A DNA stretch of 63,846 bases, the filler included, from Reticulomyxa filosa (lineage: Eukaryota; Protista; Foraminifera), in the NCBI GenBank assembly GCA_000512085.1. It is 20 parts of 20 records of this genome, joined end to end, with 100 filler letters (N's around TTAATTAATTAA, not from the genome) between each part and the next. Parts side by side here need not be neighbours in the genome. Positions count along the whole stretch, not along the records: positions 26,215 to 29,141 come from ASPP01024725.1; 19 more parts are not named here. One strand, 5' to 3'. The translations under genes and the position numbers were made by a program. The notes below the pieces were generated by a model. That model was not told the DNA's origin and did no database searches. It saw nothing but the letters and a program-made list of their open reading frames with translations. Shown here in pieces: positions 26,051 to 29,241 of the stretch. How positions within the stretch are numbered: the first letter of the stretch is position 1; each line of letters begins with the position of its first letter.

Positions 26051-27957
26051 TTTTGAATAAATAAATAAATAAAGATGTATTTTTTTTTTAACGTCATTCA
26101 AAAAAAAAAAAAAGNNNNNNNNNNNNNNNNNNNNNNNNNNNNNNNNNNNNNNNNNNNNTTAATTAATTAANNNNNNNNNNNNNNNNNNNNNNNNNNNNNN
26201 NNNNNNNNNNNNNNGGAAAAAGTGTTTACAAATGATAAAAATACTCAAATGGAATATCACTTTTACTTTTTGGCTAGTTGTTCATCAATTGTCTCACTTT
26301 ATTTTTTTTGATTTAACGTTTCTGTATGCCATTCTCCTAGTAATGTGCTGTTAATTTTCCATGCTTCTTTTATATTTTTTCTTTGTCACGTTTTTTGGGA
26401 CAAAAATACCAAAGAATAGTGAAGTTTGTTTTGTTTTTTTGGACAGAAAGTTCGAAAGGTGTTTCTATTTTTTTGTGCTTCTTTCTAAAGATTGTTAGTG
26501 TGTTATGTTCGTCAGTATAAATTCTTTTGGTATGAGTATCTTTTTGATTTTGTTTTTTTTTGTAATGATGATGAAATATTAATAGGTCTTCAGATCTAGA
26601 CCCAAAAGGTCTGAAAGGATGAGAAACTCTCTGAAGTACTCCAATTTTTTGGATCAAAACATGTCAAGCAAAAATAATACAAATAATCCTTTGTGTAAAA
26701 AAAAACAAATAATAGATGAGAACGAAAACAATCGAGAAAATAATGGCAAATGAAAACGATTTTACGTGACTTTTTTGTTGTGCAAAAAAATGTTATTACG
26801 AAATTTTGCATTTTTTTTATTGTGCAAAAAAAAGCAATACTAAATGTGGCTTATCTAATTTTGACTGTGGGAGCAGTCTTATCTTTGGTGAATTTAATAG
26901 TCGTGACTGTTGGTTGTCACAATGATGTTTTTGCCAAACTTAATGGATTGGCAATTGAAACCCCAGTTTTTATAATATACGCTTAAATTGATCTGACCAT
27001 AATTGTCAACAAAGGCTAAACCTTTATTGCTTTTCAAATTAGATTAAAATATTTTAAGAGTAATTTTAAAAAAAAGATTTGTCATCACAATCAATAATAA
27101 TTTCAATAGTTATCATTTTTGGAATGAACATTAAGTTCTATCTACATTTTCCATTTTTTACCTTCGTATTCTTTAAAAAACAAAAATTTTTGTGAATAAT
27201 TCAAATTTTTAGCTTTACATTTTTAGTACAAATTCTAAAAGTTAATGTGTAACTACACCAAAAAAGAGTTATCATATTTAGTTGTTATTTAAGAATTGGT
27301 GATATTTAGGTTAAAAACTACGAACAATATTGCTAAATATCATATTTCAAAATTATTTTTATATTTTTTCTTGTTATTGAATCTTATACATTTGTGGTTG
27401 TAATTTCTTTGTGACAATAATGCTACATACATCACTTACTAGTTGCAGTTGCTTTTGTAGAGTATATTTATACTCATGTAATGACTCATAAATGTGGTAG
27501 TCTCCTTTTCATATCAATTGTAATTTTTCGTCATACAATATTCATGGGGATTCACATTTGACATTTTATTAGTTGTCACGTTGTAAGAAGCAACTTTGAA
27601 ATACTCTTGATCTGATTGCCCTTACGTAAATAGCAACATCCAATAATTTCGTTTGTTATTTACCTCAAGTGAAGATAGAAATGAGAAATGTTATTAAAAA
27701 CTTTGTTGACTTAAATTTATAATGAAAATAAAGTGAAGAAAATCCAAGATATTTTAAACAAGTTTTCAAATAATGATGTATAACTTTGTAAAACTTGATG
27801 ATTTTGTTGTTTTTAAAAATAAATAAAGATATCTACATGATTTGAAGATCCCTAAAAAGAAAACAAACAGATTTTAACACATGTTTGCTTTATATGCGTT
27901 CATGAGAAATTTTAAAAATCATTTAAAACAAATTTTAAATTTAAATATTTAATTTTC

Positions 27958-28023
27958 TTCATATAATACTATTTATGAATGCGGTTTCGGCCTACCATTG
28001 GGCTCATCAGTGCTGTCAGGTCG
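27958..28023 (-). ncRNA. Hammerhead ribozyme-like motif 1 (type I, canonical core, stem III truncated at the element edge)
   Basis: Minus strand GACCTGACAGCA-CTGATGA-GCCCAATGGTAGGCC-GAAA-CCGCA-TTCATA...TATGAA. Confidence 0.7.
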
Positions 28024-28706
28024 CAGAATGACCGGCCACAATATGCCAATCACTTACTACTAGCCGATTATCATTGCCCCTCTTCTAGAAAGGTTGCTAG
28101 TGGTCTTCATATACCAAGTCTCCTGATTCACAGAATAGAAAACAGTTGCTTGAAACATGAAAACAGCAGACTGCAGATTGACCACCCGCCGCTTGCACAG
28201 AGTCCTGCATAGCCACCCCTACAGACCATACATAACTTGGATATTGAACAACCTCAAAGATCTATGGAGTAATGTAGAGCTTCCCCTACATGCAGCATCA
28301 ATAGAATTTTGGGCCATAAGCGTCGCAGTATATCAATCTACTAGGGCCTTTGTATAAATAGGCAAACTCTACCCCAACTACGGTCGGTTCCCGCGTGGTA
28401 GTTATTCGAAGTAGAGGATGGAGATTATAGTCATAAGAGTAACCTCCAAGAGACCAGCCACCTAGCCGTTAAGAGGTAGAACACATAAGGGAAGTTCTAT
28501 TAGATAAGACCTTTCCCTATGATAGGGCTACGAGCAATCACACTATTTAGACAAACATAGACCATCACGCCTTTCTGGTACTTTTTGGCATGGCTATTTA
28601 GTTATAAAAATATATACATATATAAATAAACATAGATTATATAATATAACATATATAATATAATATATATAAATATAATTACATATGCTATATTACCAAG
28701 TCTACG

Positions 28707-28772
28707 GGTCAACAGCATAACTTTAATTAAAAAGGTTTCGCACTGACATTGGACTAATCAGTGATGTCAGGC
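28707..28772 (-). ncRNA. Hammerhead ribozyme-like motif 2 (type I, variant core)
   Basis: Minus strand GCCTGACATCA-CTGATTA-GTCCAATGTCAGTGC-GAAA-CCTTTTTAATTAAAG-TTA-TGCTGTTGACC. Stems I, II and III can be drawn, each with a mismatch. Confidence 0.62.
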
Positions 28773-28845
28773 CAGTATTATATTAAGGTGATTGCTGACT
28801 TAAAACATCAATCTAAGGAATATACATTACGGTACCAGTGAGAAT

Positions 28846-28923
28846 GGCAATATTATCATGTAACTAGATTATCTTTTTACATGGTTTCGCCCTAACATTA
28901 GGCTAATCAGTACTATCAGGTCG
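28846..28923 (-). ncRNA. Hammerhead ribozyme-like motif 3 (type I, variant core)
   Basis: Minus strand GACCTGATAGTA-CTGATTA-GCCTAATGTTAGGGC-GAAA-CCATGTAA-AAAGATAATCTAG-TTACATGA-TA-ATATTGCC. It has a long stem III (CATGTAA/TTACATG). Confidence 0.65.
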
Positions 28924-29241
28924 ATTGGTTTCTTAACTAGCAAACACCTTGTATTCACCTAGCATTGAGCTGAGTGGGTTCTTGCTCATACTGTATTACC
29001 ATTATCACATAGCCAGGGTGTCATGGACTGCAATTAGTGGTTACACTATCTAGTGTGATCACAGTACCGCATGTTAGCTCACACTAAGTTTGGGGCCCTA
29101 GTTACTTTAAGGTTGAGGAACAAATTTGGATAAGTTGCTATNNNNNNNNNNNNNNNNNNNNNNNNNNNNNNNNNNNNNNNNNNNNTTAATTAATTAANNN
29201 NNNNNNNNNNNNNNNNNNNNNNNNNNNNNNNNNNNNNNNNN

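Follow-up and report, generated by a model that had tools for sequence, protein, structure and literature searches.

A motif on the minus strand of a non-coding stretch from the foraminiferan Reticulomyxa filosa (assembly GCA_000512085.1) resembles the core of the hammerhead ribozyme, which raises the question whether it is a hammerhead and what kind of element left it there. The motif was analyzed within a window of 63,846 nucleotides that joins 20 parts of this genome, one of which, the piece from 26215 to 29141, is taken from record ASPP01024725.1. The motif is a real hammerhead family of a kind already known, and its copies are decayed. Type I hammerheads have been described in protist genomes before (PMC6155905, PMC4209133), and none was found for foraminifera, Reticulomyxa or Rhizaria in a literature search that had most subscription journals outside its reach.

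Identification of a repeated hammerhead motif

The three copies named in the original prediction were recovered on the minus strand, with cores that start at positions 28010, 28761 and 28910 (copies 1, 2 and 3). A search of the piece for repeat families yielded three copies that are 73-76% identical over 49 nt and are spaced by 751 and 149 nt, and a core-anchored alignment gave 78-85% identity over 41 nt compared with 17-30% upstream. All copies are co-oriented, and each reads on the minus strand as a leader, the box CUGAU(G/U)A, a stem-loop closed by a G-C pair and the box GAAAC. The predicted core was thus found together with a stem-loop II of 15 nt and the stem II consensus GCCC/GGGC. A candidate fourth copy near 28170 was discarded, as alignment to the three copies gave no support.

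The motif matches the hammerhead core at 11-12 of 12 bases and additionally contains the pair G10.1-C11.1. The core boxes CUGANGA and GAAA, arranged around stem II with this pair, are complete in copy 1, and copies 2 and 3 deviate only at G8. A core descriptor, which was relaxed with the data already in view, gave three matches in the piece, all on the minus strand and none on the plus strand, compared with a maximum of two in 2000 dinucleotide shuffles. End-to-end alignments between the copies scored 48-65, whereas the shuffled maxima ranged from 26 to 45. Moreover, a covariance model of the core and stem II, built from 30 unrelated viral hammerheads that were picked for equal stem-loop length, ranked the three copies first, with copy 1 at the top, followed by copy 3 and copy 2 (bit scores in Table 1) and by a next match of 5.6 bits. 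By shuffles, alignment scores and covariance model, the match of core and stem II greatly exceeds chance, which supports the hammerhead reading.

In the suggested check by descriptor and covariance model, the relaxed descriptor and the viral model recovered the three copies, but the Rfam scan returned no hammerhead match at E 10. This blank result says little, because locus L001, an intact type I hammerhead, escapes Rfam as well. Together with the lack of a noteworthy folding z-score for copies 1 and 2, it would suit a chance sequence or a non-ribozyme repeat that only resembles the hammerhead core; such an origin is nevertheless highly improbable in view of the core matches, the G10.1-C11.1 pair and stems I and III that stand in register. 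We consider the identity of the motif as a hammerhead very likely.

Table 1. Features of the three motif copies and of the surrounding island (positions in the window)
Feature	Position	Strand	Description
Copy 1	27982..28023	-	Descriptor match; covariance model 27.5 bits; 3' half (stem III, NUH, 3' arm) missing
Copy 1, leader and 5' arm of stem I	28023-28011	-	
Copy 1, intact core CUGAUGA	28010-28004	-	
Copy 1, stem-loop II	28003-27989	-	One C.C mismatch; followed by GAAAC
Copy 2, complete type I outline	28710..28774	-	Core CUGAUUA (G8U); descriptor match; covariance model 15 bits; joint P 0.008
Copy 2, stem-loop III	28734-28721	-	Near-palindromic, 14 nt
Copy 2, triplet UUA and 3' arm	28718 (position 17); 28717-28710 (arm)	-	Arm pairs at 7/8
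Copy 3, complete type I outline	28845..28923	-	Core CUGAUUA (G8U); descriptor match; covariance model 23.8 bits; joint P 5e-5
Copy 3, stem III	28883-28857	-	7 bp; stem II 4/4
Copy 3, triplet AUA and 3' arm	28854 (position 17); 28852-28845 (arm)	-	One extra A; arm pairs at 7/8
GC-richer non-coding island with all three copies	27981..29141	.	39% GC versus 26% in the flank; change point 27981
Spacer upstream of copy 1	28024..28600	-	No homology to other spacers, no protein match; mild structure, z -2.0
Degenerate (TA)n tract	28610..28680	.	About 30 nt 3' of copy 2
Spacer between copies 3 and 2	28775..28844	-	70 nt; unrelated to other spacers

Topology of the copies

A closed stem III, an NUH triplet and a 3' arm of stem I are present in copies 2 and 3, each with lesions, and the expected complementarity of this arm to the 5' arm of stem I was confirmed in both (Table 1). 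Stem III of copy 2 comprises 4 bp and is near-palindromic, and its stem II contains a C.U mismatch. The stems I of the two copies differ by one double compensatory change from C-G to U-A and by three one-sided changes that keep the pairing, and two further double changes are added by the stems III if these are homologous. Since one-sided transitions are also expected from neutral decay, only the double changes count. These predicted pairings support a type I topology of copies 2 and 3.

The assignment to type I, made in the original prediction for the motif as a whole, applies to these two copies but not to copy 1, which represents a truncated member of the same family. Likewise, the stem III hairpin ascribed to every copy is found in copies 2 and 3, but the hairpin of copy 1 begins at position 15.7 and is followed by neither an NUH triplet nor a stem I arm (P about 1); it was rejected as a chance structure out of register, a 6-bp hairpin occurring there in 40% of shuffles. 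Copy 1 is best read as truncated because the island ends three bases past its GAAAC. Alternatively, copy 1 might be a type III hammerhead with the stem III strand and the NUH triplet upstream, in a family that mixes topologies. An upstream CGG-UC is able to pair with GAAACCG (P 0.026 before correction for six topology tests), and the island ends at the GAAACCG point, but this arrangement requires one extra base and a mismatch in stem I, and the leader of copy 1 is identical to that of the type I copy 3. We regard it as unlikely and retain truncation as the explanation.

Lesions and the shared change at position 8

Every copy is damaged, copy 1 by its truncation and copies 2 and 3 by the change G8U. 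The C3-G8 pair, which is part of the active hammerhead core (PMC3884650), is kept only in the truncated copy 1 and appears as C3.U8 in copies 2 and 3; in a Penelope hammerhead, cleavage is lost after single changes at this pair (PMC11167929). Additionally, copies 2 and 3 both have a mismatched 15.2-16.2 pair, stem II of copies 1 and 2 contains a mismatch, and an extra A follows position 17 in copy 3. The original prediction understated these lesions. The hammerhead fold of copies 2 and 3 lies 8-12 kcal/mol above the minimum-energy fold, with the pseudoknot discussed below left out of the score. Judged from their sequences, the copies in their present state are probably not self-cleaving.

Copies 2 and 3 have not only G8U in common but also a second G-to-U change in loop II, for which a parallel origin has a P of 0.03, and despite these common changes their stems covary. 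The plain explanation of the common G8U is conversion or duplication of a dead core. It has also to be considered that U8 is a trait of the family and that the motif was kept as a fold after loss of C3-G8, as a slow or non-cleaving hammerhead that serves, for instance, as a recognition signal for the reverse transcriptase of the element or as a partner that needs a second molecule. Such a role would agree with the two common changes, with the double change in stem I and the structure-keeping stem III differences between copies 2 and 3, and with the insertion of one Penelope-like element in vitro without need for hammerhead cleavage (PMC11167929). However, only two sequences are concerned, both otherwise damaged, and the sharing is explained if a dead core was duplicated or underwent gene conversion locally. 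Furthermore, a full stem II accompanies 3 of the 65 CUGAUUA cores in viral contigs compared with 70 of 122 CUGAUGA cores, which indicates that U8 is not a functional variant there. We therefore give the trait interpretation a low probability, and a slightly lower one to the wider proposition that, in a lineage for which no ribozyme has been reported, C3.U8 is normal in the host family and its fold is still selected, the hammerhead cleaving slowly or not at all and serving a mobile element as a structural signal or being rescued in trans. The copies with the common G8U provide a small test of why retroelements keep their hammerheads, for cleavage or for the fold itself (PMC11167929, PMC8557442).

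Loop II and the relation to pseudoknotted hammerheads

Loop II comprises 7 nt and may pair with leader positions -10 to -13, at 9 of 12 cells over the copies and in the register of the type I hammerhead L001, whose pseudoknot strand is located at -13 to -10. In an alternative register, loop II pairs with leader positions -5 to -8 at 11 of 12 cells and competes with the outer part of stem I. A loop II pseudoknot in one of these two registers is plausible for the window copies, and about 40% of hammerheads are predicted to have a pseudoknot (PMC3088659).

The same stem II occurs with an AAU/AAA-GGNA loop and a 4-bp pseudoknot in the loci L120, L121, L127, L129 and L058, which are true metagenomic hammerheads. 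Family-specific patterns revealed no relative in phage, viral, metagenome and prokaryote collections, in searches with a working positive control. A looser pattern applied to metagenomes revealed no relative either and detected four true hammerheads of type III, in which stem II is the same and the last four bases of an AAU-GGNA loop pair with loop I. The window copies share with the pseudoknotted hammerheads of phages, bacteria and viroid-like contigs (PMC3088659; L001, L058, L120, L121, L127 and L129) a 4-bp stem II, a 7-nt loop II of the form AAN-NNNN and a potential 4-bp pseudoknot, whereas similarity does not extend past the core and stem II, and the hammerheads of that group are mostly of type III with intact cores. 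Through the motif, a repeat of a eukaryote would be connected with the hammerhead design of phages and viroid-like RNAs, which is pseudoknotted and of the monomer type.

These likenesses could point to an integrated piece of a phage-like element, an RNA virus or a viroid-like circular RNA, with unrelated segments set apart by several hammerheads. The nearest matches of stem-loop II are located on contigs that combine a hammerhead with a hairpin ribozyme on the opposite strand or on phage-like contigs with several hammerheads, and co-oriented hammerheads around unrelated DNA are known in prophages (PMC3088659). The end of the similarity at stem II and the type III topology of the look-alikes argue against this origin, as do the lack of an ORF or protein match, an internal microsatellite, and searches of the window piece with Rfam, descriptor and covariance model that detected no opposite-strand ribozyme. 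It appears improbable, about as much as a family trait at position 8.

Some of the loci examined deserve mention in their own right. L001:997-1068 (+), on a viral contig, contains an intact type I hammerhead with a long stem III and a 4-bp pseudoknot of the 5' tail, missed by Rfam at E 1. L127:1675-2108 and L129:3761-4078 each combine a type III hammerhead with a hairpin ribozyme on the opposite strand; the small metagenome or metatranscriptome contigs concerned (3.2 and 4.6 kb) are similar to ambivirus or viroid-like circular RNAs. L121:192-1141, L113:2617-4099 and L016:2170-2941 contain two or three hammerheads in the same orientation with unrelated DNA between them.

The island and its spacers

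The left part of the piece is AT-rich (26% GC), and the island that follows has its left edge inside copy 1, just 3' of GAAAC, whereas its right side runs off the end of the piece. Copy 1 is located at the island edge and copy 2 ends near the (TA)n tract, which may be an insertion target separating two relic pieces. No coding potential and no ORF were detected in the island. The spacers lack detectable homology to each other, and the repeat is limited to the 41-nt motif; a 10-nt repeat at 28112/28694 and further spacer similarities proved to be at chance level. The folding z-score of -3.7 for the 737-nt interval derives mostly from the (TA)n tract and decreases to -2.0 without it. In the long spacer, 28484-28530 (+) contains two adjacent small hairpins, AGGGAAG/CTTTCCCT and CCCTAT/ATAGGG, in a window whose folding is not significant. 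A phmmer match to P0001 (E 8e-13) was rejected, since it is the sum over seven tandem repeats with a best single stretch of E 6500 and without DNA similarity. P0001 itself is an ORF of about seven tandem repeats at L201:5001-6128 with a TNFR/ELAPOR1-like N-terminal exon and draws false summed HMMER scores, from Pfam also.

As the spacers within the 149- and 751-nt spacing are unrelated, the hammerheads are not tandem, as they had been called, and do not form a tandem retrozyme array. A classic non-LTR retrozyme array would consist of tandem type I hammerhead units that are cut to monomers and circularised. Co-oriented type I motifs, a low GC content and the distance of 149 nt between copies 3 and 2, close to the lower limit of the 150-450 bp range (PMC7229834), are compatible with this structure, but the units have no homology outside the motif, Tandem Repeats Finder detected no period matching the copies, the spacings differ fivefold and a fourth copy is lacking. 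This reading is largely refuted locally and was assigned a very low probability. Like metazoan non-LTR retrozymes (PMC7229834; 10.64898/2026.07.22.740005), the locus is non-coding and low in GC and has several type I hammerheads on one strand; it differs in lacking homologous tandem units, in a long helix III instead of one of 1-2 bp, and in that the element is known here from DNA alone. Plant LTR retrozymes contain two type III hammerheads in LTRs, whereas here two copies are of type I and LTR homology is absent.

A retroelement as the probable source

A link to retrozymes or Penelope-like elements, as proposed originally, is plausible. The best explanation of the locus is that the three copies belong to one family of type I hammerheads and are the decayed relic ends of a hammerhead-bearing retroelement of the Penelope/Terminon type. 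The retroelement origin lowers our confidence in this whole reading to a modest preference, compared with the high confidence in the hammerhead identity alone. Membership in Penelope-like elements or Terminons is not established, because on this short piece neither a reverse transcriptase nor terminal repeats were detected.

In Penelope-like elements of fungi and protists, hammerheads of type I have a large helix III and act as monomers (PMC4209133). The window copies resemble them (fig. 3B-C of that study) in type I topology, large helix III and location in a eukaryotic microbial genome, as well as in repeated, co-oriented copies with high variation between them. They differ in that a reverse transcriptase ORF, pLTR homology and a telomeric repeat were not observed, that all copies are damaged, and that the present sequences suggest a loop II pseudoknot, no tertiary contact having been recognised in that study. 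Penelope-like elements also show a (TA)n target bias and 30-40-nt tails (PMC8557442). Terminons contain several hammerheads (PMC6431247), likewise co-oriented and separated by unrelated sequence; in contrast to them, the island has no ORFs and no reverse-complement telomeric repeats after the motif, and helix III is present.

The conservation of the motif beside diverging flanks favours the retroelement reading, as do the common orientation of the copies and the position of one copy near the (TA)n tract and of another at the island edge. Several findings stand against it: there is no upstream homology, although partial tandem Penelope insertions should show it; a fold other than the hammerhead has the lowest energy in both copy 2 and copy 3; and the two common G-to-U changes are unlikely as parallel decay, yet the stems covary. 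Rfam gave no match, though intact L001 was missed too. Neither a telomeric repeat array 3' of the copies nor a target-site duplication was found, and the collections searched contained no further family member. No match to a reverse transcriptase or GIY-YIG endonuclease remnant was obtained in the stop-free pieces, a search of low power in a decayed 1.2-kb island that is cut by the contig end.

From these data we infer past activity, a pseudoknot and a retroelement origin, which would combine as follows. The source, either an element with Penelope-like or Terminon-type ends or a non-autonomous derivative of one, would have produced a transcript from the minus strand. In its ancestral RNA, stem I would have had 5-8 bp, stem II 4 bp below a loop of 7 nt, and stem III would have been long and stable; a short pseudoknot of loop II with the 5' leader probably supported this fold. 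The transcript would have cut itself after the NUH triplet at position 17, as a monomer by virtue of the long stem III, and the element RNA would thus have been trimmed prior to reverse transcription and insertion. Truncated insertions would then have accumulated side by side and decayed. If the host is the foraminiferan, genomic hammerheads, and probably Penelope-type retroelements too, would extend to a lineage for which no literature reports were found, and the motif provides a handle for finding the autonomous element.

A putative snoRNA in the left flank

The AT-rich left part of the piece contains, at 26565-26634 (+), a layout resembling a box C/D snoRNA, in which 70 nt accommodate a C box, a D' box, a C'-like box and a D box. 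Two C/D models of Rfam overlap it with weak scores (E about 2), and the layout occurred in 1 of 3000 shuffled flanks, the pattern having been tailored afterwards. The putative guide before the D' box is reminiscent of the LSU rRNA stretch methylated by U41/snR51. Short inverted or near-palindromic elements surround the putative snoRNA at 26590-26635; they were marked as terminator-like on the minus strand and are probably incidental.
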